Shown here: in pieces, positions 1,485-64,000 of the stretch | Layout: each line of letters opens with the position of its first letter | Numbering within the stretch: the stretch's first letter is position 1 | Assembly: GCA_965112735.1 (NCBI GenBank) | Contig: OZ218961.1 | Span: forward strand, 1,116,001 to 1,180,000 | Reading direction: 5' to 3' | Origin: Phaeosaccion multiseriatum | Taxonomy: Eukaryota; Protista; Ochrophyta, other classes | Length of the DNA stretch: 64,000 bases | Notes under the pieces: model-generated | What the model saw: the letters and a program-made list of their open reading frames with translations, nothing else | Told to the model about the DNA's origin: nothing | The model's database searches: none | Position numbers and translations under genes: made by a program

Positions 1485-2546
1485 ATGCAGGGGGCTAAGG
1501 GGGGTGGTGGGCGGGGCTGCCTCTTTTGCCTGGCGCAACCGGGCCAACAGCAGCACTACAGTTGTGAGCGCGTGGACCTCGCAAGTATTCGCTTCGAGTC
1601 AGAGCCAGGCAGACGTTCTTAGCCGCTCTTTCTTACGTAGTACTACGAAAGATGGAGACAGACCTTTTTACTTCGCGGGCGGCCTCTGAGCCAGGAACTG
1701 TGGAATAAAAGCGTTACCTTCCGCTCTGCCCCCCCTCCAGCTAGCCCCGTCCGTCCTGTTCGGAAGGCGCCACTCTGCATCAGGCATACAGTAGTCAGTA
1801 GCAATGTGGGTGCGTGTGTGGGAGGGCCGGCTATCTGAGATTTGGAACTCATGCATACGTAAGGATTAGTTCACAATTTCAGTTCTGTTTGCCATTTGGA
1901 TTGCTGAGAGAGTCACGAGGTGGAGCTCAAGACGACAGTGGCACCGTATATGAAAGGGTAGGGGGGGGTAAGAAAGGTGGAGAAGAACGAGCCGAGAACG
2001 GCCGTCATCACGGTCCAGTCAGGGAAGAACGGCATCTTAGCTAGCACTTGGGCCGAGCGGCGCCAGTTGGGACAAAAATTCAAACGGGGGCTTGCGAGAG
2101 CAGAGACTTGGTACTGCCTCTGCGCAGCAGGAGGAGGACGCAGGCTCTCCAGCAGCAGAGGGGGCGCTCAGAACAGCACATCAGCCCTAGTAAGGGCTGC
2201 TGAAGAGCAGGCTGTGGAGTGAAGGCGCGAGAGGAGGTGGCGTTGGGACAGCCCTGGAAGCCGGCTCTCATATCGACGTTCAGCAGAGATCACTCAACAG
2301 CCGCAGACAGCAGCAGGGAGAGGTCAGAGCAAGACACAGACCGCAACAAGGGCTATTGAGGAGCACATATACGCTGCTGGGAGCAAGTGGCGCAGCGAGA
2401 AAGGAACCACTTGAGCATCCAAAGAAAATTGTTCGGTACGGTGCACACGCAGCATAGACGCACACCACGGACAGGGCAGGAGCAGGGAGACCTTATAGCA
2501 GGACAAGAAGGGCTGCTCAAGAGGAGCTCACTCAAGCGTAAAGGAG

Positions 2547-4040
2547 ATGGCGAGGGCGCAGCGAGCAGCGAGACAGCCGATTCCACGGGTGAGCGAGGGG
2601 GGGGCTGTCGCTGCGGTGGATCCTCGCACAAGCTCTGATGCATCGTTCATCGAGCTGCTCCTGGACTTGCATCAAGACCCAAGCATGCACGACACCATAC
2701 GCTTTGAGAATGGTGAGTGAGTGAGTTCGTTCAATGCATACCTCCCCTGCTCATGTTCCTTTGTGTTGCCCGTTCCGAGACGTCAATTGGCTTCCAATGC
2801 TCACTCCTGAACAATTGCGTCTCTCGACTCTGGAAGGTACCCTCACTGTCCACAGCAAGGTGGGCGTCATGAAGACGGTGACAAGATTCAAAAGGTGAGA
2901 AGAAGTGCGCAAGCGAGAAGGGCGCCAACCCTCCCCCGCCGCAGCTGCTCACCCCCACCAAGGACTCGAGCGTGCCCTCACCCTTGTGTCGCGCTTCCGC
3001 CGCCTGCATGCACTCGCCTTTTATTGTCTTGCCTCAGCTTCGCGAACTTTGCCCGCCAGCTCAGCTACTATCACTTCAAGCTGGTGAAAGCTGGTGAAGG
3101 GGTCCGCAAACACTTGGACACGGCGCGCTTCGTCCTGGACCCGATACTGGCTAAGGTAGGGCATGCAAATTTGCTCCAGCCCTGGCCCACTCCCAATGGG
3201 GCGAACTTTGGCGCCACAATCCTTAGGGGCCTTCCGAGGAAACAGAGCGTCAAGAGCGTCAAGAGCGGGAAGAGCGGGAAGGGACGCACGAAGGGCCGTA
3301 GCGGTCCTGCAAGCAAGAAGCCGATCATGATCAAGGGGGGGAGAGCGGGGGGCATCGAAATGGCCGTCAACAGCGTCAAGAGAGGCAAGGAGTGCCACAA
3401 GATGAGAAAGCCTAAGCTTGCTCATGAGGAGGAGGAGGAGGCGGACAAGGAGGAGGAGGAGGAGGAGGAGGAGGAGGACCAGGAGGAGAGGAACAGGGGG
3501 ACGACGACAGCAGATGGCGACGAGGAGGGAGCGGAGGGAGTGCAGGAGTTGCGTCGAGGCTCGTCAACACTTCCTACGCCCCACCAGATGCAAGCGATAG
3601 CTGCTACGGACACCGCCGCCGCTGCTGGTGCTGTAGCTGCTCCCAGTGATGGTGGGTTCGAAGCCGCTGCCGCCGCCGCTGCTGCTGCTGCTGCTGCTGC
3701 TCCAAGAGGTTGTGGGCTGTGGGGGCTTATGAAGCGGCCTCTGAGTTCAGGGGTCACTCCGGTGGACGGAGGGCAGGAGGGAGGGGACGGGGGCAGCAGC
3801 GGTGGTGCCGTGGGCGAAATCCGCTTCCTTTGTCCTGACCTTCCGAAAGGGCAGCGACGACCCTTCCTTTTGCGACCAAACATGAGCCCCCGAGCGTTGA
3901 ATGCCTGCTTCGAGCCCGAGAGCAACGGCCTTGTACTGCCTTCCGCAGTGGAGGTGGAAGCGATCAAGCCACTGGACGAGTCAGAGGAGATGGACTGGCT
4001 CGACTTTGTAAGTTTCGAGGAGGGAGAGGAGCACGATTGA
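2547..4040 (+). CDS. Divergent HSF-type DNA-binding-domain protein, paralogue A (exons 2547-2712, 2837-2894, 3038-4040)
   Basis: Spliced product: MARAQRAARQPIPRV...ASFIELLLDLHQDPSMHDTIRFEN|GTLTVHSKVGVMKTVTRFK|SFANFARQLSYYHFKLVK...LLQPW...TILRGLPRK. This matches the HSF DBD layout (F..L..l..D...I.W..G.f.v...F....SFvRQLn.YgF.K...LL..i.RK). A K/R-rich NLS-like region, an acidic run and an acidic-aromatic C-terminus (EEMDWLDFVSFEE) follow. Confidence 0.8.
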
Positions 4041-7238: not shown

Positions 7239-8144
7239 CTGTGCAGTGGGCATGCAGCCCGCCCTTTGCAGTGAGCCGGCCCCTTCGAGCCAGCCAGCTG
7301 CAACACTCCGCCCCCCCCCCCCCCACACTCCTCCACAGGTAAGGTATGGCGTCCTCTGACCGATCCTTTGGGGCTGTCAGACGTCGTTCTATACGATGGT
7401 GGGGCGGGGAGTCCAAGCTCCCACCTCGCTCCATCAAGTTAAGTTAACAGATGCAGCGCGCGGCCTTGACGTCGCTGCCATATTGGACTTCAGCCGAGGC
7501 AACGGCAATACACGGCACAACAGTTGGTGATACAAGCCCACATGGCAGCAGTTGGTAATACCGCACAGCAGCACTCACTTGGCAACCCCCCCTCGTTCCT
7601 GTGTATGTGTGGGCTTGCCTTTGTCTACCTGTCTCTTTGGCTATCGGCTACTCTCCCTCGCGAGGAGAAAACGAGGAGGGTATGGTCGGGCAGCAACACA
7701 GCATTCAAATCTCCACACCGCGCCCCCTCTTAGCCAGCTCTGTCTGCCCTCATTGGAGGGTGCCACTTGTTATCAGATTCAATGCTTAGGCAGTTCAGTG
7801 TGGGTGTGTGTGTGGGGGTGAGACCTGAAATTGAGAACTCATCCTTGCAGAGGAAATGGTGCACAGTGAGTGAGTGAGAGGTGGAGCTGCTGCAGAGGAG
7901 AGAAGCACCGTACAGGGCAGTGCAGGGGGGCAGGGGCACGGTCAAGGGGAGAGAGAAACGAGGACCGTTCCGGGACCTTTCTTCACTTTCAGTAAGTCAA
8001 TGCGATTTTAAATGCCCAACGGTGTCTTTAAGCCAGGGGCTTTTTGGAGCAAAAGCTCAGCTCAGGCAGAGCAGTGGCAGACGGAGCTCAGAACATCACA
8101 TATGGCATCGACGGTTGCTGAAGAGGAGCTCACGTGTATCTGAC

Positions 8145-9480
8145 ATGATGGCAAGCCGGCTGGAGCGGAAGAGGAGCAGGAATAGCGATGGGAAAGTGCC
8201 AGCAGCTCCGGAAGGACCCAAGACCCCAGCAAGCCAGGAGACAAGACACGAGAGCGGGCTCGCTGCAGCCACCGCAAGCCATCCCCGAAAAAGCAGAGTG
8301 AGGAAGAGGGGAGGAGGAGGAGGAGGAGCAGCCAAGGTGGCGAACGTGGGGGCTGCCGCTGCAGATAACCCTCGGGCTAAAAACTCCAAGGTACCCTTCC
8401 CCGAACTTCTTGTCGATTTAACTCAAGACGAGAGCCTGCATGGAGTCATACGCTTTGATACTGGTGAGTATGGTCGTCGGGTGATGTGTGTTCGCTCAAT
8501 TGGCTTCTAATCCACTTTTTCCTCTTCCCTTTCTTCCTCACCCCGCCCTTCACATGAACTAACACTTGTCACTCTGGAAGGTATCCTCACTGTGTACAGC
8601 AAGAAGAAATTAATGGATATCATAGGCGAGCGCTTCAAATGGTGAGAAGGAGTGATTGTAACAGCACAAAGAGTGTGCACCTCCCCCCACCACATCCAAT
8701 CCTGCCCCCTTTAATTGCTCGAACACAACAAAGCATGTCTCACGTTCATTCTGTTGTATCGCTCTCTCGCTGCCTGCATGGGCCCCTCCTTGCCTCGCCT
8801 CAGCTACGACAGCTTCGCGCGCCAGCTCAAGTACTACCACTTTAAGCTGCTGCAACAACAGGACGCAGGACATTCTGACCAGGCCTGCTACACTCTGAGC
8901 CAGACATTGGCTGATGTAAGGTGTGGGCATTTGCTCAAGTCCTGGCCCTCTTCCACCACGCCAGGCTATGGTGCCTCAATCCTTCGAAGCCTTCCGAGGA
9001 AACAGGGGGTGAAGACCAGGAAGAACGGGAAGGGGCGCGCATCAATTCCGAAGAGGCCCACCAAGAGTGCTAAGAGGGGCGTCGGAAGGCCTGCCAATAG
9101 CGACAGGAGGGGGACCAAGAGGCGCGCCGAGGTGAGGAACCCAGAGCCTGCGCGAGAGTTGGAGCTGGAGGAGGAGGAGGAGGAGGAGGAGGAGGAGGAG
9201 GAGGAGGAGGAGGAGGAGGAGAGGGGGATGAGAGAGGAGAAGAAGAAAGGGAGGAGGATGGGGAAGGGGGGGGTGGAGAAGAAGATAGAGGGGAGGGGAG
9301 GGCAGAGGAGGAAGGAGATGGAGGAGGAGGGGGAGGAGGAGGAGGAGGAGGAGGAGGAGGAGGAGGAGGAGGAGGAGGAGGAGGAGGAGGAGGAGGAGGA
9401 GGAGGAGGAGGAGGAGGAGGAGGAGGAGGAGGAGGAGGAGGAGGAGGAGGAGGAGGAGGAGGAGGAGGAGGAGGAGCAGA

Positions 9481-9514
<34 letters not shown>

Positions 9515-9839
9515 CCGAACGACGGACGAGGAAGAGGAGGAGGAAGGGGAGGGGGAGGAGGATGAGCAGGAGGGGCGGGAGGAAGAGGAGGAAGAGGATG
9601 AAGAGAGCCTGACCCCGGGTGTGTTTTCTTTCTTGAAGGCCCGCGCGGGTGAGGAGGCAGCACCGGAGACCAGCTTGACTCAGGTGCTACAGCAAGAGGC
9701 AGCTGGGATGGAGGGTTCGACGGAGAGGATCAGCCTCATGGACCAGGCAGCGGAGCTGTACCCGAGTATCGCCCTGCAAGAGGAAGAGGACATTCTCCTT
9801 CATCATTTTGGTGGTTTGGAAGAGGGCAGCAGCGCGTGA
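8145..9839 (+). CDS. Divergent HSF-type DBD protein, paralogue C (exons 8145-8463, 8581-8641, 8804-9839), with long poly-Glu tracts
   Basis: ...KVPFPELLVDLTQDESLHGVIRFDT|GILTVYSKKKLMDIIGERFK|CYDSFARQLKYYHFKLLQ...ILRSLPRK. Same two introns as A and B. (GAG)n encodes E-runs at 9168-9219 and 9321-9476. Confidence 0.8.
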
Positions 9840-17501: not shown

Positions 17502-29322
<11,821 letters not shown>

Positions 29323-29992: not shown

Positions 29993-32900
29993 ATGGCGAC
30001 TGCTTCGCCTAAGATGAGCGTGCCCCAGACAGAGGATGGAAGAGTAGCAGCAGCAGTAGCAGCAGCAGCAGCAGGAGGAGGAGGAGGCGGCGAAGGAGGA
30101 GCGGGAGGGGGAGGTGGAGGAGGATCAAGACTAGCAATGGAGTCGGCTACGGCAGCAAACTTGCCTTATTTGCTGGGAAGTCCCAGCCCCAGCCGGAAGC
30201 GTCGGAGCCCCCAGCCCCCTCAGCAGCCGCAACGCCGCAGCAGAGTACAGCCTGTGGCACAGACCGTGGGACTAAAGTCGTTGGCGGATTTGAGAATGTT
30301 AGGTGAGAGTGAGGGAGAGAACGAGTCACAAGAAGTCAGCGAGCAAAGGAGAGAGGGAGGGAGGGAGTTCAGCGAGGAGAGTCAGCGAGCAAAGGAGAGA
30401 GGGAGGGAGGGAGTTCAGCGAGGAGAGTGAGTGAGTGGGTTGGCGCGAGACGCCCCTCCATGCGGCAACACCACATTGCTCGTTATTTATACCTGCTGCT
30501 GGGCAACTCTACTCTCTCTCCATATCTCTCTGTGTAGACGGGTTTTCCATCAAGGATCGAACCCTCTGTCTCGTACACTTAGTGGTACACAGATAAACAA
30601 TGCTCGATAGGAAAGCCGCCGTATAGAAGGCCTTACAACCCCCTCAACACACTCATCTCTACAACACTCCTGCTCTGCTTTCTCCCTCATCCTCCTCTTG
30701 CTTCATCGACCCTTCGCCCTGCCGCAAAACAAACAAAAACTGCATGGATACCCCAATGCTTCCACCCCAACCCGCTGCCTCTGCAGGCTTAGCTCCCGCG
30801 CCTCCTGGTCGCAACGCGTGCACCCACCGCAGAGTAATGGCCCCTGCCGCAGGAGGAGGAGTAGGAGGAGGGGACGGCGGCCGGTTGGGCGGATGGGGTG
30901 GCGGAGGAGAACAATGTGTGCTCGGGGCCATGCCCTCTGGTCTCACCCTCGTTATGGGGGGTAGTAGTGGGGGTGGCAACGCGAGCGCCACACACATGCA
31001 CCTGCAGGCACAAACGCACACACACGCGCACGCACCCACGGCCACAGCAGCGGGACCGAACGGCGCAGCTCACTACAACATCGCCACTTCCACTCCCTCA
31101 ACGACCATCACGCCCTCAGCATCAACTGCCATTCCACACGCTGCTGGGCTTCTCAGCAGTGCCGTGCCCTACATGCTGGGGGGAGGAGGAGGCGCAGGAG
31201 GAGAAGGAGGAGGGTTAGCAGGGGAGGGAAGAGGGGCAGCGCGGGGCATGGAGAGCAGCTGCAGGCTCATTATGACGGCGGCACCAAGCGTCAGTGTAAC
31301 CGCGGACGTGAACAACCCGAGAGGCGGAGGTGGGGGTAGAGGAGGAGGAGGAGGAGGAGGAGGAGGAGGAGGAGGAGGAGGAGGAGGAGGAGGAGGAGGA
31401 GGAGGAGGAGGAGGAGGAGGAGGAGGAGGAGGAGGAGGAGGAGGAGGAGGAGGAGGAGGAGGAGGAGGAGGAGGAGGAGGAGGAGGAGGAGGAGGAGGAG
31501 GAGGTGGGGGTGGGATGGGGACTCCAGGACAGGCTGAGCGACACGGGCCAGGCAGACGCACCTCCTCCCTCTCCCCCACTCGAATGGGGGGGCGACAGCG
31601 GCACCATCACAACCACCAGCACCAGCCTCTGGCATCCAGTGCCATCTCCTTCTTCCCCGGGCTGGACAGCAACGGCAGCAGGGCCAACAGCCCATCGCCG
31701 AAGCCCGTATCACCAACTGCTGCGCAAACTCAGAGCTGTGACACCTCCAGCAACCAAGACCGGCCTGGTCATGGTGTAGACCCGTCGAGGGCGGTGTACC
31801 GATCAGAGCCGCTGCATGAGCGGAGCACCAACGCGGTAGGAGGAAGCCAATTGGGGGGAGGGCAACAGGTTCGTCTCCGTGCGTTTCGTGCGTTTCGTGC
31901 GTTTCGTGCGTTTCGTGAGATTCGTCCCTGCATCGACTGGGTGTTGCTTTTCTGTCGAGGTCTTTCTTTCCTGCCGCCCACGCACCCACCCACCACCCTC
32001 TGGGTCCTGACACCCCCGACCCCTACGCCCGGTACGCATCGCTCTCCCTCTCTCACTCATTCACTCACGCACGCACTGCCTTCCTTCCCTCAACCCCCCC
32101 TCCCTCTGTGTGGTTGACTGACTGACTGATTGACTGACTGACTGACTGACTGACTGACTGACTGGCTGACTGACTCATGACCATCACAGGGCGGGTTCAA
32201 GTCTCGTGTGGACTTCCTGCTGCCGGACAGTCGAATACCCTCAAACATGCACATGTATGAATCGTCGCCAGTGAAGTTCGCCGACAGCGACCCTAGCTAC
32301 GAGGAATGGTAAGGGAGGAAGGGAAGAGGGGGGGGGGGAGGAAGGAAGGGATGAACCGGTGGGAGGTAGTGAGCGAGTGGGTGGGTGGGTGGGTGGGTGG
32401 GTGGGTGGGTGGGTGAGTGAGGGAGTGAGTGAGTGAGTGGGAGTGAGTGAGCAAGTGGTTGAGTGAGTGAGGGAGTGAGTGCGTGAGTGAGTGAGTGGGT
32501 TGAGTGGGTGGGTGAGTGAGTGAGTGAGTGAGTGAGTGAGTGAGTGAGTGAGTTAGTGGGTGAGTGAGTGAGTGAGTGAGTGAGTGATTGAGGGAGGGAG
32601 GGAGTGAGAGAGTGAGTAAGTAAGTGAGTGAGTGAGTGATTGAGTAAGTGAGTGAGTGAGTGAGTGAGTGAGTGAGTGAGTGAGTGAGTGAGTGAGTGAG
32701 TGAGTGAGTGAGTGAGTGAGTGAGTGAGTGAGTGAGTGAGTGAGTGAGTGAGTGAGTGAGTGAGTGAGTGAGTGAGTGAGTGAGTGAGTGAGTGAGTGAG
32801 TGAGTGAGTGAGTGAGTGAGTGAGTGAGAGAGAAAGTGAGAACTTCTGCCGTGTACAGCCCAGACTGGAAGGCTGTGGACGGCCCGCCCACCTTCTCCCT

Positions 32901-35900
32901 CCGTCCTAATCTTCCTCCTCCTATGTATTGCACTGTCCCCCTTCTCTTTGACTCTCTCCCTCTGCCCTGTGTCCCACTGACATACTCCCCAAATTGACAT
33001 ACTTATTGACTTACTGCTCGTGGAAGGTACGACGCCTCGGCCAAGCTGTGGCGCAGAAAAGTGTTTCCCGCCAAGCGACCCGCCAACAGGCAGCAGGTGA
33101 GAGAGTTGGTGATACAGAGGGGGGGGGGGGGGGAGAGAGGGGGGGAGGGAGAGAGACAGAGAGACAAAGAGAGAGGGGAAGAAGGAATAGGCAGGGAGAG
33201 AGGGAGAGAGAGGGGAGGGGAGAAGGGAAAGAGGGCGAGTGAGAGAATGGGAGAGAGAGGGGGGCAGAGAAACAGAGAGAGAGAGGAAAGGCAGGGAGAG
33301 GGGGAGAGAGAGGAAGGGAGGGAGAGAGGAATAGGCAGGGAGACGGGGAAAGAGAGGAAGGGAGGGAGAGAGGAAGAGGCAGGGAGACGGGGAGAGAGAG
33401 GAAGGGAGAGAGAGAGGAATAGGCAGGGAGAGAGGGAGAGAGAGGGTACCGGCGGTAGGTAAACGGAGGGACTCTCTCCCTGAACCCCCGCCTCCCCATC
33501 ACAAATGGCTTAGGTGCACCTTCTGCGCGAGTGGATGACCAGCGCCTTGGCGGCCAGACTCGCGGAGGAGAAGCGGATGGCAGTCAATGACGACAATGAA
33601 GATGACGACTACTGGGGGGAGGGGGAGGGGGAGGATGGCAATGGATGGGGGGAGGACGAGGACGAGGACGAGGAAGAGGAAGGGGAAGAGAGAGAGGGAG
33701 AGGAAGAGGGAGAGAGCGAGGAAGAGGTTGGAGAGCAAGGGCCGGAGGAAGAGGGAGAAGAAGAAGAACGAAGGGGCGGTGCGGATGGGGAGAGCGGGGA
33801 GGAGAAGCACGGCAGCAAGCTGCGGAGCAAAGGGAAGGGAAAGAGCAAGAGGAGTAGACGCAGGGGTAGAAGGAGGAGTAATAGTAATAGCGAGAGTAAC
33901 TGCGAGAGAAAGAGGAAGAGTGGGAGCAACAGCAAGACCGAGAAGAAGAGGAAGAGGAAGAGCTTCACCTCGCCCGGGCTGGTGCGTGATCAGATGAATA
34001 TTCTCATGGTGGGCTTCTTCGAAATCGTCCGCCAAGTGCATTACCATTGTGCCGAGCGAGGAGAGCTCCTGAATCGTATCTGGCTCAGTCTCAACGATCT
34101 GATTGAGTATGTGGTGCATGAGATGAGCGAAACCATTCAAGCGACGGATGCCAAGCTGCATGATATGGCAGAGTCCATGCACAGTGAGCGAGAGGGGGCC
34201 AAGTTGAACTCTCAGAGACAAGCGGAGCTGCTTGCCACGTCAGTGGCCGAGCTGAACAAGCATTGGACGGCCAAGATGAAGCAGGTACCGTAGAGTACTA
34301 TAAGGAGGAAGAGGAAGGGCGATGGATCATTGCATAGGACCTGTCCCTCCCCCTCCTCCGCGCCTTCGTCCTCAGGCTTTCTTCCTCCCTCCCCTCCCTC
34401 CCCTCCCTCCCCTCCCTCCCCTCCCTCCGCTCCCTCCGCTCCCTCCCCTCCCTCCCCTCCCTCCCCTCCCACCCCTCCCTCCCCTCCCTCCCCTCCCTCC
34501 CCTCCCTCCCCTCCCTCCCCTCCCTCCCCTCCCTCCCCTCCCTCCACTCCCTCCCCTCCCTCCCTCCTTCCCTCCCTCCCTCCCTCCCTCCCTCCCTCCC
34601 CTCCCCTCCCTGCCCTCCCTCCTTCTATATCACCAACAGGTCAAGGCGACGCTTGTGGTACAGGACAGACTGCTGAGGCACAATGCAACGACAGCGCATC
34701 ATGTACGGAACTGGTTTCCGCATTTCGGAATATATTCTGATTCTGTGCTTGGTGACATCATGGAAGTGGTGAAGAGAGAGGGAGAACAAGAGGCAGGAGG
34801 GGAAGGGGAAGAGGGGGGAGAGAGGGGGGGAGGGAGTATCACCGCTGGTGAGGTAAGGAAGGAGCAGACGGAGGAGTGGCGGCCGGAGGGCGAGGAGGAG
34901 GAGGGCGCGGAGGCGGAAAAGGAGAAGCTATCTCCGGAGGCAGCGTTGGTGTGTGACTTGCGCAGAGTGTACTCACTGGCAACCAAGCTCGTGCACAGCG
35001 AGGACCAAGGAGGGGATGGCAGTAGATGCCACCAAGGAGGGGATGGCAGTGGATGCCACCCCTCTGACGGGGCGGGAGTGGGCGTGGGGGTTGAAGGTAA
35101 TGCGGTGGAGAAGAGGAATGATGGCGGCTTTGGTCCGGGTAGGGGTGATGCCGTCTTCAAGACGTTGAGCGAGTGGAAGAGAGAGGCAGCCCGAGAGGCG
35201 GCTGAGGAGTTGGTGCGTGCTGCTACAGCGGCTGCGGAGACTGCGGAGGCGGCTGCTGAAGCTGCTGCCATTGTTGATGCAGCCGTTGATGATACAGCGG
35301 CTGGTGGTACAGGGGTTGGTGACACGCCAGTGGAACCAGCAGTCGGACAGCAGCAGCAAGAGCAACAGACGACGACGACGACGACGACGAGCGGTGAGGA
35401 GGGGGCCACAACCGCGGCAACTGCTACGTCAGCTGCACTTGCAGAGAGCCCAAACTCAAGCGCAGCTCTGCATCTGGGATGTAACGGCGACAGTCCTCGC
35501 CAACTGAGAGCCGTCATCCAACAGACAACCAACATGCTTGGCGACGTGACGGAGACCCGGATGGAGTCCAGTACATTAATGAAGCGCATCAAGAAGCTTG
35601 TAGAGGCGCCACTCAGTGCTCTTGGAGCTTTAGGAAGCCTGGCTGCTGTATCACCAACCGGTGGGGGTGGGGGTGGGGGTGGGAACGGGGATGGTGGTGG
35701 AGCTGCACTTACTCAAGGAGGAGGAGGAGGAGGAGGAGGAGGAGGAGGAGGAGGAGGAGGAGGAGGAGGGTCGAGGTGGGGGAAGGCGAGGGTGCTGGCA
35801 GCGAAGGCTTCTGGGAGTGTTGGTGCTCCAGGCAGAGCTATTTGGAGGAGACGGAGGTCAAAGAGTCAGCCTAGGTTATGCTATTGGCGACCGCATAAGG

Positions 35901-38900
35901 AGGAGGAGGAGGAGGAGGATGAGGATGAGGAGGAGGAGGGGGAGGGGGAGGGGGAGGAGAAGGAGGAGGTGGTGGTGGTGGAGGAGGAGGAGGAGGAGGG
36001 AGAGGGGGGGGGCGAGGAGACGGGTCACCAGAAGGAGGGGGAGAAGGAGGAGGGCGAGAACGGAGGAGGGGAAGGTGGAGAGGGGGGAAGCCTGGAAGAG
36101 AGCGGGGTGAGAAAGAGCGGTGGGAGAAGAGGTAGGCAGGGTAAGGGGAAGAAGAAGGGAGGGGTAGGGACGAAGGCCGATTCGTTGGGCCAAGCTGCAG
36201 TGGAGCAGACGGACAAGGAGGGGCAGGAGGGCGGGGGGGACAGCGAGGAGGACAAGGAGGAGGAGGGGGAGGGGGAGGGAACGGAGGAGAGGGAGGACGA
36301 GGAGGAGGACGACGGTGACGAGGAGAAGGAAGACGAAGACAAGAAGGAAGAGGGGAAGAGGAAGAGGCCCTCGCTTATTAAAGACACGAAGCAACAAGCA
36401 AGCAGGGCACAAGCGGCCGAGAAGGAAGAAGGAGTAGGAGGAGAAGGGGGTGGACGTAGTAGTGGTGGGGCATCGCAGCAACGAAGTGAAAGCGACGGTC
36501 GTGGTGGTATTGGTGATCATGTTCGTGGTCGTGGTCGCCAACTGTCAGCCGGCCAGCGCCCGCTCATCGTGTCGCTCCTCCTGGGCAAGCAGCACGAGAC
36601 TCAAGCCACTCTTGATGCCCTCCAGGCCAAGGTCGAGAAGCTGACTACTGAGGCTCTCGACAAGGACCAGAGGGGCAGGGCGGAGCAGCTCAAACTCACA
36701 CAGGTAGGGGGTTGGTTGGTTGGTTGGTTGGTTGGTTGGTTGGTTGGTTGGTTGGTTGGTTGGTTGGTTGGCTGGTTGGTTGGTTGGTTGGTTGGTTGGT
36801 TGGTTGGTTGGTGGGTTGGTTGGTTGGTTGGTTGGTGGGTTGGTTGGTTGGATGGATGGATGGTTGGTTGGTTGGTTGGTGGGTTGGTTGGTTGGTTGGT
36901 TGGTTGGTGGGTTGGTTGGTTGGATGGTTGGTTGGTTGGTTGGTTGGTTCTTGCTGTGCAAAGAAGTTGCTTTTGCTTTTTAGACTGCTGCCCCATCTCC
37001 CTCCCCTCCCCTCCTCTCTCCCCCCCTCGCTCAGACCACAACTCGCTTCGAGGGCTCCATTATGTCACTGCTGCAAGACCCCTGCAGCTTCATTCATTCC
37101 GACCAAGTCTTCCCCGACCTCCTTAGCGCCGTTGGTCTACCCTCCCTTCAGTCACAGGTAGCCTACTACTATTGGTGATACGTTTGATTGTTCACTTGTA
37201 ACCCCCTCCCTCCCTCCCTCCCTCCCTCCCTCCCCTCCCTTCCTCCGTATCACCAACATCCCCCCCCCCCTTCACAGATAGCGTACATCAGCGGCAAAGT
37301 GCTCCTCCCGATCCCCAACATTTACAACGCCATTGTGCGAGTTGTCAAGGCGGTAAGTGCGTGTCTGTGTCTCTGCCTTAGGAGTGTGTGTGTGTGTGCG
37401 CGTCTGTCTCTCTACCTTAGGAGTGTGTGTGTGTGTGCGTGTCTGTGTCTCTACCTTAGGAGTGTGTGCGTGTGTGCGTGTCTGTGTCTCTACCTTAGGA
37501 GTGTGTGCGTGTGTGCGTGTCTGTGTCTCTACCTTAGGAGTGTGTGTGTGTGTGTGCGTGTCTGTGTCTCTACCTTAGGAGTGTGTGCGTGTGTGCGTGT
37601 CTGTGTCTCTACCTTAGGAGTGTGTGTGCCCGCGCGCGCGCGCGTGTGTGTGTGTGTGTGTGCGTGTGTGTGTGTGTGTGCGTGTGTGCGTGTGTGTGTG
37701 TGTATGTGCGTGCGTGCGCGTATGTGTGGTCCATCACGGCCTCCTGCCCAACCGTTGTTCTGTGATATCAACCGACTGCTGCTGTATCACCAACTGCGGC
37801 GGTAAACCTAACTGCTGCTACTGTGATGTATCATCAACTGCTGCTACGATACCACCAACTGCTGTATCACAGATGCACCGGAGTCACAGGGAGCTCTCTG
37901 GCACGTTTCACGCCATTGCTCAAGCCGCCCCTGCAGTGGGTATGCAGGTGGGTTGTTAAAAGTGTGGGTGGGTGGGTGGGTGTCAGGACAGAGGGTGGGT
38001 GTCAGGACAGAGGGTGGGTGTCAGGACAGGTATGCAGGTGGGTGGGTGGGTGGGTGGGCAGTGAGGTATGCAGGTGGGTGAGTGGGTGGGCAGTGAGGGA
38101 GACACACAGGCGTGTCTCACTTCCTCCTTTTCTCACTCACTCACTCACTCACTGACTCACTCACTAGCTTACTAACTCACTCACTCACTCACTCACTCAC
38201 TCACTGACTCACTCACACACTCACTCACTCACTCACTCACTCACTCACTGACTCACTCACTCACTCACTCACTCACTCACTCACTCACTCACTCACTCAC
38301 TCACTCACTCACCCACTCACTCACTCACTCACTCACTCTCTCACTCACTCACTCACTCACTCACTCTCTCACTCACTCACTCACTCACTCACTCACTCTC
38401 TCACTCACTCACTCACTCACTCACTCACTCACAGTTTACTGACTAACTCACTCACTCGCTCACTCGCCCACTCCCTCCCAAACGCCCACTTATCCCCCCT
38501 CCCCCCAACACACAGGGTGAGCGTGGCCTGTCAAAGTTTCTGTACGAGCAGCAATTACAAGAGCACTCCGGAGTTTCCTCCGCTCACGCCCGTATCAGGC
38601 ACTTACTGGTGTGTAGTAAGTCACTGAAAGTCGCCTCCTAATTGATAGCTTGACTGGGCCCATGCAGTGCCATCCACTGCCATCCACTGCCATCCACTGC
38701 CATCCGCCGTTTCCCTCCGTTCTTGGTGGTGTGCTGCCATATGTTACTCAAAGGCTCCTCCTTTCTTTGACTTTGTACATGCTTTTGAAGAGGGTTAGGG
38801 TATGGGTGCTCGATGGAGCGACTGACTAGCGCACACATGCACTGCCATCCATGCATCCATCCGTCCATCCATTGCCATCCATCCATTGCCATCCATCCAT

Positions 38901-39188: not shown

Positions 39189-40750
39189 GGTGGGTGTGTG
39201 TCTTCTACAGTAGGGGTGATGTTGCTCTTGATAGTCTTCTGTAACGCTTTCCTCTCTATGCTCCCTTCCCCCATCTTCTCCTCTCCTCTCGCCTCCCCTC
39301 TCCCCTCTCCCCTCTCCCCTCCCATCCATTGCCATCTACAGCTGTCTCACAACGAGAACTTCTCTCCCTCGGAGGAGCTTCTGTGGTTACGAGTCTTTCA
39401 ATTCCTCGAGGAGTTCATCCCTCTCGCCCCAAGCTCAGTCGCCCGGCGGAAAGGAGCAGCAGCAGCAGGAGGAGGAGGAGCAGCAGCAGGAGGAGAAGGA
39501 GGGACAGCGAAGAGCGGCGTGAATCGTCATATGGCGACTCCTTTGATTCCACTCCGTATAGCAAAAGCCGCACTAGAGCAGCTCTTTGAAGGCGCACGGG
39601 AGCTTCGCATCAACAAGGTGATCGTCGCCAAGGCTCAGCGGGCGGAGGACCAACGCCACCACCACCACCACCACCACCATCACAGCTTTACAGATGATGA
39701 CGACGGTGGGCGGGGGATGGCAGTGGATGGGAGCAGCGGTGGTGATGAGAGCGATTTGGCCAAGCGTTATGGCGGAGCATTCCTGTCAGGGCCGAATGTG
39801 AACTCAAGAGTGGGACAGCGGTATGCCGAGGAGATGGAAGCACATCGCCTGGCTGTGCAGGTGCGTGTAGGCCAAGGGGTGGGGTGGAGTGGGGGGGTAG
39901 AGTGAATTAGGGTGTGGTACCGTACCGCGCTACCTAGCGCATACTCTTACTCGTGGTCTGCTTCTCCCTCTCCCTCTCCCTCTCTCTCTCTCCTTCACTC
40001 TTCCTCTCTCACCTCTCTCTCCCCCTCCCCCTTCTCTCTCTCTCCCTTTTGTTCCTCTCCCTCCCCCTCCCTCCCTCCCTCCCTCCCTCCCTCCCTCCCC
40101 CTCCCTCCCTCCCTGCCTCCTTCTTTCCCCCCCTATCTCCGCCTCCTTCTCCCCCTCCTCTCCCCTCCCCCCCCCCCCATCTCTCCCCCCCCCCCCTCTC
40201 TCCCCCCCATCTCCCGACAGAGACGACGCATGCTGAAGTTCTGGGACCGAGAGCTTGCGCTTGGTGGGGTGTCAAATCCTTGGCGGCTTGTGTGTAAGCC
40301 TGTGGTGCAGAACGCGTTTCGCTATCTCACTAGCATGACGCCGATGAGCGGAGGTGAGTGAGCGAGTGAGTGAGTGAGGGAGGGAGTGAGCGAGTGAGTG
40401 AGTGAGGGAGTGAGTGAGTGAGTGAGTGAGTGAGTGAGTGAGTGAGTGAGTGAGTGAGTGAGTGAGTGAGTGAGTGAGTGAGTGAGTGAGTGAGTGAGTG
40501 AGTGAGTGAGTGAGTGAGTGAGTGAGTGAGTGAGTGAGTGAGTGAGTGAGTGAGTGAGTGAGTGAGTGAGTGAGTGAGTGACTGAGTGAGTGACTGAGTG
40601 AGTGAGTGAGTGACTGAGTGACTGAGTGACTGAGTGACTGAGTAACTGAGTGACTGACTGAGTGACTGAGTGACTGAGTGACTGAGTGAGAGAGTGAGTG
40701 AGTGAGTGAGTGAGTGAGTGAGTGACAGAGTAATGCATAGGGTCAGGCGA

Positions 40751-42058: not shown

Positions 42059-43821
42059 GTACGTGTGTGTATACCGAACTGAGCTGAATGATTTCACCCT
42101 CAAGTGCCATCTGCGCATGCCTCACAGCAACGATCGATTGGGTAACCACGTCTTGATTGGGTAACCACGTCTTGATTGGGTAACCACGTCCTCCTGATTG
42201 GGTAACCACGTCCTCCTGATTGGGTAACCACGTCCTCCTGATTGTGTAACCACGTCTTGATTGGGTAACCACGTCCTCCTGATTGGGTAACCACGTCCTC
42301 CTGATTGGGTAACCACGTCCTCCTGATTGGGTAACCAGGTAACGCCTGAGATGATGGCTGAGGCGCTGGTGGACTTCCCCTTGCCCTGCTCCGGCCTCGC
42401 ACCCCTTTTCAACCTCAACGACGAGGACTTCAGCAAGCTTGTGCTCAAGGAGGCCGCTGAGGTGCGTACGTAAGGTTACGGATGCGAGATTGAGATTCCA
42501 TGCCTATATACCTATATGTAGAGAGAGAGAGAGAGAAAGTGGGGATTGGTTCGGAATGAGAGAGAGAGAATGAGGGAGAGAGAGGAGGGAGAGAGAGGGA
42601 GAGAGGGGGAGACAGAGATGGGGGTAGAGACAGAGACAGACAGAGAGAGAGAGAGACAGACGGAGAGAGAGACAGAGAGAGACAGAGAGAGACAGAGAGA
42701 GACAGAAAAGAGTGTATTGCTATAAGATGTGGTTTGCTGCACTGCGCAAGATTCCGTGTGGTTGATTTCCCGAGGGGGGTGGGAGGGGGGAAGGGTTCCA
42801 TGGTTCTTTCTTTCTATCGTACCCACTGGAAATACTGGGTGCTGCATGTTCGCTTGCCTCGCTTCTCTCGTCTCTTGCGTCTCTCCCCTCCTCTTCTCTC
42901 TTCTCTCTCCTCCCTCCCCTCTCCACTCTCGCCTCCCGCCGTCTCGTCTTGATTTGGCTTGGCACTCTCTCTCACACACGTGTGTGCACGCACACACACA
43001 CATACGCACAAACGTCTCGCTCTCTCTCTCACACACACATACACACGCATACACATACTCTCTCTCTTACACACACACACACACACGCACTCACGTTGGT
43101 GATACTCCCTCACAGGCCCAACGAATCCGCACGTCACTAGTGCACAGCCTTTTTGAAGGTCAGGAAGATGACGTCACCACAGAAAAGGATGACGTCAGCC
43201 TCATAGATGCAAGGGGGAGGTGAGTGAGTTTTGGTACCTCGTCTAGGAGGAGGAGGAGGAGGAGGAGGAGGAGGAGGAGGAGGAGGAGGAGGCCTGTTGA
43301 GGAGAGATGCACCTCCGTTTGCTTCGTGCTTTGTGCTTCCTGTTGCTTGCTCATCTCGCCCTGTGTACTCCCTCTGCCTCCTTTCGCACACACACACACC
43401 CTCACACCTTCAATGCCCCTCCTTCTTATCCCATCCCTTCGGTCCTCCTGTCATTCTGCACGCGCCCGCACCCCCACCCACCCACCCACCCACCCACATA
43501 CACGTGTTGGACCTCCATTGCAGACAAATCATGGTGTTTGCCAACACCGCGAGAGTGGACGACAATGAGGACAATATCGCACGACTTTGGATCAGTTGTC
43601 ATCTCCTCCGAACCGAGATTGACCTCGTGCGCCTGTGGGGTAGCGTGGTGCACGCGCCGCAGTACCAAAGGGCCTTGCAAGACGGCCTCCGCGCCATTTG
43701 TCGGAGGCGTTTCACGGCATGGAGGCTGTGGTGCGAGCAGAGCAAGAGAGAGCGGGGCAAGGGGCGAGTGGGTCGAGTGTCAGGAGGGTTAGTTTCAGTG
43801 CCAGTGGTCGGCGATGACTGA
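29993..43821 (+). CDS. AXDND1-like axonemal dynein light chain (p28-type) domain protein with a C-terminal EF-hand-like region, ~17 exons
   Basis: Exons ~29993-30302, 30788-31868, 32190-32308, 33027-33096 ([14 protein letters not shown]), 33514-34284 ([12 protein letters not shown]...[32 protein letters not shown], matching the p28 signature F.E.iRQV...C.ERG.LL), 34640-36703, 37279-37352, 37873-37939, 38516-~38610 ([24 protein letters not shown]), 38932-39045, 39342-39860, 40220-40353, 40903-41003, 41446-41894 ([15 protein letters not shown]), 42339-42461, 43116-43219, 43524-43821. Confidence 0.7.
32415..32828. repeat. (GAGT)n intronic microsatellite (others at 40354-40725; (CACT)n at 23438-23760 and 38133-38430)
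   Basis: Directly visible. Confidence 0.95.
36710..36948. repeat. (GGTT)n intronic microsatellite
   Basis: Directly visible, immediately after the donor at 36704. Confidence 0.95.
37356..37628. repeat. ~38-40-bp minisatellite (gtgcgtgtctgtgtctctaccttaggagtgtgtg..) x7
   Basis: Starts inside the donor gtaagtgcgt of the exon ending at 37352. Confidence 0.9.
42137..42337. repeat. 18/21-bp minisatellite GATTGGGTAACCACGTC(CTC)[C/T]T x10, ending at the acceptor AG
   Basis: Directly visible. The last unit ends gtaaccag|GTAACG. Confidence 0.92.
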
Positions 43822-44542
43822 GGAGAAGCCTGGACCCCGAGTCTTCTTCAGATGATACTCACACTTTGTTGGAGAAAGCATAGGAAGCTTCTCCATATCG
43901 ACATCGACCCCATTTTTAGAAGTGTTCGACTTTTCTACTAGTTCGAAGTAGTACTTTAGAAGGTCTCGTAGGAAGTGTAAAGTGGGCCCTGGCTGAGGGG
44001 CCGAGAGAAGACAAGAGAAACGGACCGTGCGAATGAATGAACGGACCCACATGGCCCCGCCCCTTGAAAGTACCCCTTGTTTGGTGCTTCCGTGGTGCAG
44101 CACATCCAAAGGGTGGCCACTTTGAATTCATTTGACGTTTAATAATAACTTCTACTGTACCCATCATCTTAGCGAAAGTCCTTCCTTATCTTGAGAGACA
44201 AGATGATGCACCCGTCGTTGGGGTCTGCCAGAGGGTAAAATCTGATTGGCTTCCCACGCTTCCTGCCTCCTACCTTACTTCTTTAGTGTAATTAAAAACC
44301 GAAGCCACTCGCTGGCGTCTTTAACATAACATTACGCTGGGGGCGGAGTAGGAACTTTGACTCCCCGCCCCACCATGGTATAGAAGCGACGTCTGACAGC
44401 CCCAAAGGATCGGTCAGAGGCCGCCATACCTTACCTGTGGAGGAGTGTGGGGGGGGGGGGGCAGAGTGCTGCAGCTGGCTGGCTCGAAGGGGCCGGCTCA
44501 CTCCAAAGGGCGGGCTGCATGCCCACTGCACAGCTCACTCAC

Positions 44543-46033
44543 TCAATCGTGCTCCTCTCCCTCCTCGAAACTTACAAAGTCGAGCCAGTCCATCTCCTCT
44601 GACTCGTCCAGTGGCTTGCTCGCTTCCACCTCCACTGCGGAAGGCAGTACAAGGCCGTTGCTCTCGGGCTCGAAGCAGGCATTCAACGCTCGGGGGCTCA
44701 TGTTTGGTCGCAAAAGGAAGGGTCGTCGCTGCCCTTTCGGAAGGTCAGGACAAAGGAAGCGGATTTCGCCCACGGCACCATCGCTGCTGCCCCCGCCCCC
44801 TCCCTCCTGCCCTCCGTCCACCGGAGTGACCTCTGAACTCAGAGGCTGCTTCATAAGCCCCCACAGCCCACAACCTCTTGGAGCAGCAGCAGCGGCGGCG
44901 GCGCCTTCGAACCCACCATCACTGGGAGCAGCTACAGCACCAGCATCGGCGGCGGTGTCCGTAGCAGCTATCGCCTGCGTCTGGTGGGGCGTAGGAGGGG
45001 TTGAGGAGCCTCTACGCAACTTCTGCACTCCCTCCGCTCCCTCCTTGTCGCCATCTGCTGTCGTCGTCCCCCTGTTCCTCTCCTCCTGGTCCTCCTGGTC
45101 CTCCTCCTCCTCCTCCTCCTCCTCCTTGTCCGTCTCCTCCTCCACATGAGCAAGCTTAGGCTTTCTCATCTTGGGGCACTCCTTGCCTCTCTTGACGCTC
45201 TTGACGGCCATTTCGATGCCCCCCGCCCTCCCCCCCTTGATCAAGATCGGCTTCTTGCTTGCAGGACCACTACGGCCCTTCGTGCGTCCCTTCCCGCTCT
45301 TGATGTTCTTGACGCTCTTGACGCTCTTGACGCTCTGTTTCCTCGGAAGGCCCCTAAGGATTGTGGCGCCAAAGTCCGCCCCATTGGGAGTGGGCCAGGG
45401 CTGGAGCAAATTTGCATGCCCTACCTTAGCCAGTATCGGGTCCAGGACGAAGCGCGCCGTGTCCAAGTGTTTGCGGACCCCTTCACCAGCTTTCACCAGC
45501 TTGAAGTGATAGTAGCTGAGCTGGCGGGCAAAGTTCGCGAAGCTGAGGCAAGACAATAAAAGGCGAGTGCATGCAGGCGGCGGAAGCGCGACACAAGGGT
45601 GAGGGCACGCTCGAGTCCTTGGTGGGGGTGAGCAGCTGCGGCGGGGGAGGGTTGGCGCCCTTCTCGCTTGCGCACTTCTTCTCACCTTTTGAATCTTGTC
45701 ACGGTCTTCATGACGCCCACCTTGCTGTGGACAGTGAGGGTACCTTCCAGAGTCGAGAGACGCAATTGTTCAGGAGTGAGCATTGGAAGCCAATTGACGT
45801 CTCGGAACGGGCAACACAAAGGAACATGAGCAGGGGAGGTATGCATTGAACGAACTCACTCACTCACCATTCTCAAAGCGTATGGTGTCGTGCATGCTTG
45901 GGTCTTGATGCAAGTCCAGGAGCAGCTCGATGAACGATGCATCAGAGCTTGTGCGAGGATCCACCGCAGCGACAGCCCCCCCCTCGCTCACCCGTGGAAT
46001 CGGCTGTCTCGCTGCTCGCTGCGCCCTCGCCAT
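44543..46033 (-). CDS. Divergent HSF-type DBD protein, paralogue D, near-identical to A (exons 45868-46033, 45686-45743, 44543-45542)
   Basis: Exon 1 and 2 lengths (166, 58) equal those of A, and intron 1 appears identical to A's. The ORF 44543..45685 matches 2895..4040 for ~100 aa, then shows scattered substitutions and in-frame indels. Confidence 0.8.
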
Positions 46034-47596
46034 CTCCTTTACGCTTGAGTGAGCTCCTCTTGAGCAGCCCTTTTTGTCCTGCTATAAGGTCTCTCTGCTA
46101 CTACCGTGTCCGTGGTGTGCGCCTCTGCTGCGTGTGCACCGTACCGAACAATTTTCTTTGGATGCTCAAGTGGTTCCTTTCTCGCTGCGCCACTTGCTCC
46201 CAGCAGCGTATATGCGCTCCTCAATAGCCCTTGTTGCGGCCTGTGTCTTGCTCTGACCTCTCCCTGCTGCTGTCTGCGGCTGTTGAGTGATCTCTGCTGA
46301 ACGTCGATATGAAAGCCGGCTTCCAGGGCTGTCCCAACGCCACCTCCTCTCGCGCCTTCCCTCCACAGTCTACTCTTCAGCAGCCCTTACAAGGGCTGAT
46401 GTGCTGTTTTGAGCGCCCCCTCTACTGCTGGAGAGCCTGCGTCCTCCTCCTGCTGCGCAGAGCCAGTATCAAGTCTCTGCTCTCGCAAGCCCCCGTTTGA
46501 ATTTTTGCCCAACTGGCGCCGCTCGGCCCAAGTGCTAGCTAAGATGCCGTTCTTCCCTGACTGGACCGCGTCGACGGCCGTTCTCGGCTCGTTCTTCTCC
46601 ACCTTTCTTACCCCCCCCTACCCTTTCATATACGCTGCCCCTGTCGTGTTGAGCTCCAGCTCGTGACTCTCTCAGCAATCCAAATGGCAAACAGCACTGA
46701 AATTGTGAACTAATCCTTACGTAAGTATGAGTTCCTAATTTCAGATAGCCGGCCCTCCCACACACGCACCCACATTGCTACTGACTACTGTATGCGTGAT
46801 GCAGAGTGGCGTCTTTCAGACAAGGCGGACGGGCGGAGCTGGAAGGTGCGCTCAGTGGAGACTTCGTGGCTGGCTTGCCTTGCCTACTCGACCTTTCCTC
46901 GCGAGAATGGAGGACGCGTACACTGTACGTGCGTGCAGAGAGAGGGAGAGAAAGAGACCAGTGGTGCAGCAGCTCCGAAGGAAGCCACTTTGAATAGATT
47001 CATTCGCGCCATTTTTCCATAATATTAACTAACTTTGAAAAAAAGAAAGACTACTTACTGCTCTATTACGGTGTGCCAGTGTGAGATTTTTTTAACCCCC
47101 CCCCGCCACACACACACACACACACCGCTGTATCACCAACTGCTGCACGGTGAAGTGCTCTATCACCATTTTAAACTTTTGCGCAGTGCTGTGCTTGCAG
47201 TCTCGGCTGAGGTCCAATATGGCAGGGACGTCAAAGCCAATGACTGCATCTATCCCTAGTACAAAATTTAAAATATCTTCCCCCTCCCCCGGGGGGACTT
47301 GTGTAGCCAGCGACGTCTGACAGCCCCAAAAGGATCTGTCAAAAGACCCATGCCTTACCTCTGCCCTCTGCAGGACTGAGTTGGGCTGGTGGAGTGTTGC
47401 AGCTGGCTGGCTCGAAGGGGCCGGCTCACTCCAAAGGGCGGGCTGCATGCCCACTGCACAGCTCACTCACTCACTCACTCACTCACTCACTCACTCACTC
47501 ACTCACTCACTCACTCGCGCTCCTCCCCTTCCTCAACGTACATCGTCACACGCATCCAGCAGCAGCTCCATGGGGTAGATGGGCACGGAAGGGCTC

Positions 47597-48962
47597 TCAA
47601 AGAGCATGTAGAAAGCGAGGATCTTCCTCCTCCCATACAGGGCGCGTCGGAAAGTCACGGCTCCCTGGTCGGAACGGCGCCGCGCTCCTGCTGACTTCGC
47701 TCAAGTGTAAGCTTGGGCTCATGATTGGGCGCCAAAAGAAGGGATCTTGCTGCCCTTGTGGATGGTCAGGACAGAGGCAGCGGACTCTGCCCCTCGCACC
47801 GCCGCGGCTGTCCTTCCTACCCCCTCCCTCCTGTCCGTCATCCTCCTGTGTGAGCACTGCACCACGAGGCTGCCTATGCCTCCTCCGCCTCCCACCACGA
47901 TGGGGAGCAGCAGCAGCAGGAGGAGCAGCCGCCGCTCCTTCCGTCTGGCAAGCTTTATCGGGTGTTGAGGAGCCTCGATGCAGCTCCTGCTGTCCCTCCG
48001 CCCCCTTCTCATCGTCATCTGCTGCCATCTTTCCCCTCTTCCTCTCCCTCTCCTCCCCCTTCTCCTGCTCGTCCTCCTCCTTCTCATCCGCCTCGTCCGT
48101 CTCCTCCTCCTCCTCCTCCTTGGCAAGCTTAAGCTTGCTCGTCTTGCGACACTCCTTACCCCTCTTGACGCTCTTGATGGCCGTCTCCGGAGCCGTGGCG
48201 CTTCCCTGCCCGCCCTCAACGCTCGTGGTGTTGTTCGGCTTCCTCCTGCGAAGGTGCCTGAGGATGATGGCAGCATAGTCATAGCCCGGCAGAGTGGGAG
48301 AGGGCCATGGCTGGGGCCAGTGAGGAAGGCCTGCCTCAGCCAGTGCTGCCCCGTCCAGAGTGTAGGTGGCCTCGTCGTGCACAGAGCCTCGAGCGCTCTC
48401 TGGTAACTTCTTTGGCTTCAACAACGCAAAGTTGTAGTAGCTGAGCTGGCACGCGAAGTTTTCGTAGCTGAAACAAAGCGAGAAGGGGCCAGTGGAGGCA
48501 GCAAGAGAGCGATACATCGGAGACAGCCAGCCTGCCGTTAGCTCGCGCAGGGGGTAGCAGCTGTGGCGGGCGAGGTGTACTGACGATTCGTGCTGCTGCA
48601 TGCATTCCTTCTTACCAGGAAAATCGATTGCGGAGTACTTTCATGAGGCTCTTCTTGCTGTAGACGTGGAGGGTACCTTCCAGAGCGGGCAAGTGTTCGT
48701 TCGGGGGTGAGTATGTTTGGAAGCCAAACGGCGCGTCTCGGAACGGTCAACACAAAGGAGCATGAGCAGAGGAGGCATTGAACGAACCCACTCACTCACC
48801 ATTCTCAAAGCGTATGATGCCGTGCATCTTTGGGTCTTGATGCAAGTTCAGGAGCAGATCGATGAACGGTGCACCAGAGCTTGTGCGAGGATCCACTGCA
48901 GCTTCAGCCCCCCCTTCAACTTGGGGGATGCGCTGGTTCCCTGCTCCCTGCGCCCTCGCCAT
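47597..48962 (-). CDS. Divergent HSF-type DBD protein, paralogue E: B-like ends with a distinct DBD core (exons 48800-48962, 48616-48676, 47597-48467)
   Basis: MARAQGAGNQRIPQV...PFIDLLLNLHQDPKMHGIIRFEN|GTLHVYSKKSLMKVLRNRFS|CYENFACQLSYYNFALLK...IILRHLRRRKPNNTTSVEGGQGS.... Exon 1 and the tail match B. Confidence 0.75.
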
Positions 48963-50827
48963 CTCTAGGCCTGAGCGAGCTCCTCTTGAGCAGCCGCTCT
49001 CGTGCTACTATGAGCTCTCCCTGCTCCTGTTCTTGTCACGTGTGCGCCTGCTGAGTGTGTCTCCCCGTCCTGGAAGAAAATTCCCCGTTCTCTGCTCACG
49101 TGGCTCCGTTTCCTCAGCACCACTGGCTCCCAGCCGCGTCCCTGTCCTCAGGCCTACACCTGTGTCTTGTTCTGATCTCTCCCTGCTGCTGCCTGCGGCT
49201 GATGCGTCGGGATCACTGCGGAGCCCCAACTTCAGTGCGGCGCTTCCAAGGCTGTCCCAACGCGGCTTCCTCTCGCTCTTTCCCTCTGCAACCTACTCTT
49301 CAGCAGCCCTTACTAGGGCTGACGTGCTGTTCTGAGGCCCCCCTCTGCTGCTGGTGAGCCTGCGTCCTCCTCCTGCCGTACAAGGCCATTATCAAGGCTC
49401 TGCTCTCCAAATCCCGCAATCTTCGGAGTGTGCCCAACTGCCGCTCCGTCCAAGCGCTAGCTAAGATGCCATTCTTCTCTGACTGGACCGTGATGACGGC
49501 CGTTCTCGGCTCGTTCTTCTCCACCTTGCAAAACACCCCTGGCACTGTCATATACGCTTCCTCTGTCGTCTTGAGCTTGAGCTCCACCTCGTGACTCCCT
49601 CAGCAATCCAAAGGGCAAGTAGCACTGAAATTGTGAACTAAGCCTTACGTAAGCATGAGCTCCCAATTTCAGATAGTCGGCTTTCCCACACATCCCATAC
49701 CCTGCGTTGTTATTGATGCCTTGTTATTAATGCAGAATGGCGCGCATGTGGCTGTGGCTGTGGTACCCTCCTCCATCTCTCCTTGTGAGAGCGTCCGGTA
49801 GCAAGAGAGGGAGAGGGAGAGAGAGGAAAGTCGGGGACGAGTGGGAGATAAGAGAGTGGGAAAGAGACAGCGAGAGAGAGAGGGGGCAAGAGGAAGAGTA
49901 GGATAGAGTGGGAGAGTGGCAAGAGAGAGAGAGAAAAAAAGAAGCGAGAGAGCGTGAGAGATAAAAGGAGAGAGACAGACAGCGAGAGACAGACAGAGAA
50001 AGAGAGAGAGGGAAGGGGTGGGGGGGAGGGGGGGGAGGAGAGGAGACAGACAGAGGAAGGGGGGCAGGCAATACAATATACAATTGATGCACTTTCATCT
50101 CTTTTCTTGTAGAAGTATTTTTTTTTTGGTATTTTTTTTTTGGCAAAAGGAAATAGCAGTACTCGAAAAAACTGAAACTTCGTGGTCACGCAAGCGGAGG
50201 GAAACCCAAGGGGGGGTCCCCCTTTTTTTTCCTCCCCTCTTCTCAAGTACTTCATTTCTAAAGGCGTTTGTTGTTGCCTTTGCCTCCGGAGCGCCGCGCA
50301 TGGGTGCGAAGGCTTGCATGGAGCAAGTACGTACAACAGTAAAATAAAAGAGAAGGGAGAGGTGATGAAGGGAGGCCGGAGCGAGCAAAACGCCATGGGG
50401 TGCACGCGAGTATGAGCATCATGCTGTCCCTCCTTGGTGCTCGGTAGTCGGTAGTCGGTGCGTTGGTTTGCGCGACCGCCGCCGCCACACTGAAGTGCCT
50501 CGCATTCAATGCCATCGCCTATCGCAGAGGGATGGGTCGCGTTTCCTTCCAGCGACAGGCAAACGACAGTGTAGGATAGGATAGGCACTTGGTGTGGCTG
50601 AGGGAAACGCACCCTCCTTCCACCCAGGGAAATGTAACCGATAGTGACCAATGTAACCGATGTAACCAATGGCAAGACACATCCATCCCTCCACTTGATT
50701 GCGGGCATGAGTGGTGTTGGCCCTACACTCCATGTACACACCCTGCGGGGCGGCCAACCGAGCATGACCACGCTCTCTTCCCTCCCCAAGTTGCCGTTGC
50801 TAACCGCTGCTGTGTCACCAACTGCTG

Positions 50828-51270: not shown

Positions 51271-64000
<12,730 letters not shown>

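Follow-up and report, generated by a model that had tools for sequence, protein, structure and literature searches.

A recombination mosaic in a cluster of five putative transcription factor genes from Phaeosaccion multiseriatum

Our comparison of five paralogous genes, A to E, which lie together in a 64-kb stretch of Phaeosaccion multiseriatum DNA (the window), supports the view that the contrast between paralogues B and E is a mosaic generated by recombination or gene conversion between paralogues. Parts of E are nearly identical to B, while a segment that covers the DNA-reading half of its putative DNA-binding domain (DBD) is as far from B as from the other copies. The pattern of site identities shows that E is a patchwork of many pieces rather than a copy of B with one swapped cassette. 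The process is the well-known, textbook one of gene conversion between neighbouring copies; the example is new and the family unusual.

The gene cluster and its family

The window belongs to contig 12 of a 67-Mb genome assembled into 22 contigs. Its five paralogues have three exons each. Paralogues A (about 1800–4550, ATG at 2547), B (4860–7600, ATG at 5605, exon 3 at 6103–6937) and C (about 8300–9839) are on the forward strand, and D (44350–46780, ATG at 46033) and E (47000–49710, ATG at 48962) on the reverse strand. C is the most divergent of the five copies, and B is the partner of E in the young tracts described below. The predicted coding region of E (47597..48962, reverse strand), delimited by tblastn of the exon peptides together with open frames, comprises exon 1 (48962–48800), intron 1 (48799–48677), exon 2 (48676–48616), intron 2 (48615–48468) and exon 3 (48467–47597, stop included). 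Intron positions, phases and GT–AG junctions are the same in all five copies, the DBD-coding sequence is divided among the three exons in each of them, and the last exon is open in five of five (277–344 codons). DNA and protein searches of the whole 67-Mb genome returned these five copies only and no sixth member of the family.

Judged by sequence comparison, the five copies appear to form an orphan, lineage-restricted family with a recognition helix resembling that of heat-shock factors (HSFs). When each exon was scanned separately, no exon of any copy matched the HSF-type DBD model (PF00447) or Pfam, and PF00447 run against all six frames of the genome gave 28 canonical HSF matches, none of them in the window. 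However, a profile of the exon 3 start of the five copies aligned with the genome's own canonical HSFs at the recognition helix (hhalign probability 92.8%, E=4e-7, 19 columns), and the motif SF-x-RQLN-x-YGF marks this homologous region. Exon 1, by contrast, showed no profile similarity to the HSF N-terminus. A language-model feature search, which we treat as a lead only, ranked HSF-type clusters first (0.87, with 173 of 256 features in common). Neither a word search with exon 3 of E nor a profile search against 1.84 billion representatives found relatives, the latter returning three low-complexity matches only. The unusual point is the family itself, which Pfam fails to detect and for which the searched databases yielded no relatives. 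The HSF family is strongly expanded in diatoms and has been reported not to be so in other photosynthetic stramenopiles (PMC4827209). The five proteins presumably bind DNA.

The two groups of genes are related in a crossed manner. The E–D intergenic spacer (46780–47476) is colinear with the A–B spacer (4035–4800) at 81–84% identity, and blastn aligns 4035–4565 with 47476–46955 at 81%; the E–D spacer thus resembles the A–B spacer, yet among the gene bodies A goes with D and B with E. A simple inverted duplication of A–B into E–D was considered and rejected, since the gene order does not fit and the kinship of the spacers is crossed with that of the gene bodies. Several repeats accompany the genes. 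Long (GAGT)n tetranucleotide microsatellites are present on either strand (7076–7184, 47462–47516, 23417–23760, 32381–32840, 38116–38477 and 40342–40731), one of them directly 3′ of B and another 3′ of E. The tail of C carries a very long poly-Glu run, encoded by (GAG)n, at 9150–9600, where A, B, D and E have shorter acidic runs, a source of many low-complexity self-matches. Moreover, a dispersed or tandem repeat, whose copies are about 67–78% alike, occurs at 49800–50000, 62000–62790, 57110–57360, 42520–42710 and 33130–33440, and the copy at 49800–50000 sits directly upstream of E.

Identity steps between paralogues B and E

An earlier note on this DNA had described an abrupt divergence of E from B between about 48730 and 48250, with a return to B-like sequence at the codons for RRKPNNTT, and sliding windows, pairwise alignment and a maximum chi-square test all agree with that description, including the point of return. 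Identity is stepped and not uniform along the gene: windows of 100 columns give 91–98% over 48994–48722, 46–69% over 48721–48248 and 95–100% from 48247. The pairwise alignment is near-perfect as far as position 48736 of intron 1 and becomes so again at 48247. By segment, identity is 95.6% over 48962–48736 (exon 1 plus intron 1 to its midpoint), about 63% over 48735–48251 and 96–98% in the greater part of the tail, which begins at 48250. Of all two-breakpoint partitions, the best falls at 48701/48253, with differences of 153/405 inside and 201/1634 outside. Its maximum chi-square of 163.6 compares with a mean of 10.5 and a maximum of 30.1 in 500 permutations (P<=0.002), and a Fisher test of the core against the flanks gives p=2e-40. 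Jukes–Cantor distances between B and E are 0.045 for exon 1 plus the adjoining part of intron 1, 0.51 for the core and 0.084 for the tail.

In the multiple alignment, the divergent core that is unique to E (48251..48735, reverse strand) shows 63% identity with B, 65% with A and 63% with C. It begins midway through intron 1, takes in exon 2 and all of intron 2, and extends over the first 72 codons of exon 3, the exon 3 part holding the recognition helix, the following loop or wing and the end of the DBD. Upstream of it on the same strand, a B-like tract (48736..49000) takes in exon 1 together with the ~40 nt of 5′ leader directly before it and the 64 nt of intron 1 directly after it, with 3–9% differences from B per 100 nt. 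Downstream, the B-like tail (47521..48250, reverse strand) runs from the RRKPNNTT codons of exon 3 to the stop and into the start of the 3′ flank. This tail is 92% identical to B overall and internally heterogeneous, its blocks differing from B by 2.3% to 17%. It opens with the longest run of sites at which B equals E, 23 variable sites at 48248–48191, a length reached in none of 10,000 permutations (P<1e-4). Near its end, over the last ~35 codons of E (47621–47720), the difference from B rises to 17% from 4% in the 300 nt before them, which marks another, older patch.

The divergence of the core extends to positions that are silent in the protein. Synonymous B–E distance rises from 0.055 in exon 1 to 1.46 in the exon 3 part of the core and falls to 0.10 in the tail, exon 2 being saturated. 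The core introns differ as the exons do: intron 2 and half of intron 1 show 27–38% B–E difference by block, intron 2 itself 27–30% as against 3% in the first half of intron 1. Pairwise dN/dS stays below 1 in the exon 3 core (0.35–0.8), and the values for exon 1 and the tail (0.45–0.9) suggest that constraint outside the core may be weak. Since introns and silent sites diverge together with the coding positions, the contrast points to recombination and not to selection on the protein, and the intron and synonymous data rule out positive selection as the cause of the core divergence. At the same time, homology of the core introns is still plain across A, B, C and E (z above 7 for intron 2; at least 4 for intron 1 against C), so the core belongs to a lineage of this family and is not foreign DNA.

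Separate trees for the three segments, as proposed in the earlier note, differ in topology. The core tree unites A, D and B (support 100/99) and rejects B+E as a clade (AU p=0.0026), while B and E are sisters in the segment made up of exon 1 and the start of intron 1 (68/82) and in the tail (89/83). In these two flanking segments, however, the alternative topology is not rejected (AU p=0.16 and p=0.09, respectively), because C forms a long, poorly aligned branch. The B–E contrast is carried by the branch lengths (0.045, 0.51 and 0.084 in the three segments).

The core also bears on the putative function of E, which differs from the HSF-type domain in a further respect, the lack of the recognition-helix Arg. 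A Cys codon, TGC (48449..48451, reverse strand), stands in place of the Arg of the recognition-helix motif FARQL, which is encoded by CGC in B. In protein and DNA alignments alike, A, B, C and D keep the Arg and E alone has Cys. The counterpart of this Arg contacts the bases in solved HSF–DNA structures. The replacement corresponds to a single C-to-T change at a CpG. About 60% of the aligned core residues of exon 3 differ between E and B, and in E the recognition helix is followed by an insertion of some eight residues. If these putative DNA-binding proteins do bind DNA, E would read a different site or bind weakly.

Further blocks in paralogue E and the A–D tract

The mosaic is not confined to the coding region. 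Upstream blocks were scored by the site patterns of A/B/E triplets, with permutation tests on run length. In the promoter-proximal region and 5′ leader, a block at 49001..49300 (reverse strand, as are all blocks of E) is unique to E: A and B agree against E at 66 sites, compared with 13 for B=E and 5 for A=E, and E differs from B by 17–39% while A and B are 90–94% identical. A second E-unique block lies at 49401..49500 (16 sites of A=B unlike E, one of B=E), and a run of 16 A=B sites at 49455–49397 was reached in none of the permutations (P<1e-4). Between the two, 49301..49400 is A-like (16 sites of A=E against 5 of B=E), with runs at 49369–49360 (P=0.0005) and 49316–49309 (P=0.003). Further upstream, 49501..49600 is again B-like (11 sites of B=E against 3 of A=B) and differs from B by 3.2%. 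On the other side of the gene, the 3′ flank and spacer of E (47000..47460) are A-like, with 83–97% identity to A against 30–81% to B, and this similarity runs on into the upstream region of D.

Two elements of the earlier description are not supported in view of these blocks. B and E had been assigned a shared promoter, but 49500–49401 and 49300–49001 are unique to E and 49400–49301 is A-like. A single cassette had been proposed, but the B-like blocks vary in age, with 2–17% difference from B (heterogeneity p=1e-5), and several events are therefore required.

A second pair of copies shows a tract of another kind. Positions 2508..3267 of A (forward strand) and 45313..46072 of D (reverse strand) differ at 2 sites in 760 nt, while the flanks carry 61 substitutions in 1366 nt (30/669 upstream and 31/697 downstream), which sets the A–D background divergence at 4.5% (tract against flanks, Fisher p=5e-10). 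The near-identical segment starts 40 nt ahead of the ATG and takes in exon 1, both introns and the DBD core. A and D are in inverted orientation and 42 kb apart, and we read the segment as a recent conversion tract between inverted copies. This tract shows that conversion in the cluster can carry a whole DNA-binding region. It ends ~34 nt past the position homologous to 48250 of E, where an indel-rich stretch of SVK repeats starts. The junction between domain and tail is thus a recurrent boundary, probably because homology breaks down there. One could go further and regard the DNA-reading half as an exchangeable unit bounded at this junction, whose modules are homogenised or kept independently of exon 1, promoter and tail. 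We consider this doubtful; if it were true, a young transcription factor family could recombine what its members bind with when and how they act, and E would read a different site.

Origin of the divergent core

The young tracts of E have B and A as their sources or recipients, while the core (48735–48251) is without a source copy in the genome. A DNA search of the genome with 48240–48740, as the earlier note had advised, returned no donor, only E itself plus C (70% over 275 nt) and B (69%). The protein search of the same genome gave only the five loci of the window, at up to 49% identity (48–49% for A, C and D, 44% for B). The proposed replacement from a donor thus finds no counterpart among the five copies that make up the family in this genome, with nothing above 70% in DNA or 49% in protein. 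Features of the core said to be closer to C than to B are present as described, namely YSKKSLM in place of YSKKKLM, TYTL against CYTL, and the split junction codon, which is TG/C (Cys) in E and C and AG/T or AG/C (Ser) in B, A and D. The core as a whole, however, lies at a similar distance from A, B and C (62–75% identity to each by block, compared with 76–88% between A and B), and C as its donor was rejected on these values and on the 63% identity in the multiple alignment. In an unrooted tree of four effective lineages, the grouping of C with E amounts to no more than the other side of the split that unites A and B. Residues common to E and C can be ancestral states.

Of the readings considered, we find it reasonably probable that E kept an old core lineage while its flanks were replaced piecemeal by conversion from B and A. 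Ectopic (interlocus) gene conversion or unequal recombination would pass sequence among the five copies. The 485-nt segment 48735–48251 would be E's own old lineage, split off about as deeply as C, and the B-like stretches (49600–49501, 49000–48736 and 48250–47521) and A-like stretches (49400–49301 and 47460–47000) would be younger tracts from neighbouring copies. Copying-in at several different times would have left E with a B-like exon 1 and tail around a distinct DNA-reading half. We infer the direction, flanks overwritten rather than core imported, from these considerations: the extant neighbouring sources suffice, so that no lost donor is needed, and overwriting fits the interleaved E-unique blocks and the unequal ages of the tracts. 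Either selection or low homology may have kept conversion out of the core. The earlier proposal of segmental gene conversion stands as far as a recombination mosaic is concerned, but not with regard to an imported C-like core, a shared promoter or a single cassette.

The direction might also have been the reverse. E could be a recent full-length duplicate of B, in which the segment from helix 2 to the wing was then converted from a divergent paralogue since lost or missing from the assembly. Two findings that count against overwritten flanks lend this some weight. The mean B–E divergence in the B-like blocks is about 5%, close to the A–D background, which also fits one duplication that made D and E, followed by replacement of the E core. 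Furthermore, the A–D tract is a DBD-sized segment moved as a unit, with an end within ~35 nt of the counterpart of 48250, and the core of E has sharp edges on both sides. Nevertheless, we hold an imported core to be rather unlikely. The 22-contig assembly offers no donor in DNA or protein, C does not qualify as one, the B-like blocks are not of one age, the 3′ flank of E is A-like and not B-like, and the two E-unique and two A-like blocks would call for extra imports from the same lost donor. No outgroup or orthologue that would root the direction was found by the word search or the profile search described above.

Divergence of the core in place after a B–E duplication, by diversifying selection or a local mutation hot spot and with no recombination, would account for the coincidence of the divergent segment with the DNA-reading half and for the Cys in the recognition helix. 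We judge it very improbable, given introns as divergent as the exons, the contrast in synonymous distance (1.46 against 0.055–0.10) at a dN/dS of 0.35, a boundary inside an intron and the rejection of B+E in the core tree. That E is a chimera of mis-joined paralogous reads is less probable still, in our estimate extremely so: the copies have stretches of more than 95% identity, which could confuse assemblers, and unitigs do break at 48219–48248 and 48800–48807, where sequence common to B begins, but the core is unique in the genome, so that it could not have been borrowed from another copy, and a 582-letter short-read contig with no differences spans 48219–48800 and both junctions in four of four runs. 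These runs stem from one sample, probably that of the assembly itself, and their support is accordingly not independent. The depth of the contig equals that of other unique, single-copy stretches, and the short-read contigs stop where the sequence becomes common to B, as expected of a mosaic.

Interlocus gene conversion and concerted evolution are known to give mosaic paralogues with unhomogenised islands in globin, RH and opsin genes and in plant NLR clusters. The cluster described here is like these in its abrupt identity steps, in introns and silent sites homogenised together with exons, in trees that depend on the segment, and in tracts of a few hundred nucleotides and varied ages between tandem as well as inverted copies about 42 kb apart. 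It differs in that the family is one of putative transcription factors and in that the binding domain's DNA-reading half forms the island, whether escaped or swapped. Cassette systems such as yeast MAT/HML/HMR, trypanosome VSG and Neisseria pilS–pilE copy silent donor segments into an expressed gene. They share with E a variable middle between conserved flanks that could guide homologous recombination; here, in contrast, there is no donor archive but five apparently complete genes, none of which matches the core of E, and no sign of programmed switching. A search of the literature found nothing specific on conversion-driven swapping of DBDs in HSF families.

Overall, the cluster offers a clean and well-delimited case of patchy concerted evolution among putative transcription factor genes. 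The DNA-reading part stays distinct in one pair of copies, B and E, and is copied wholesale in the other, A and D, while neighbouring parts of the same genes have histories of their own. Should the proteins bind DNA, the five copies would constitute a natural series of domain-swap chimeras for finding which segment sets specificity.
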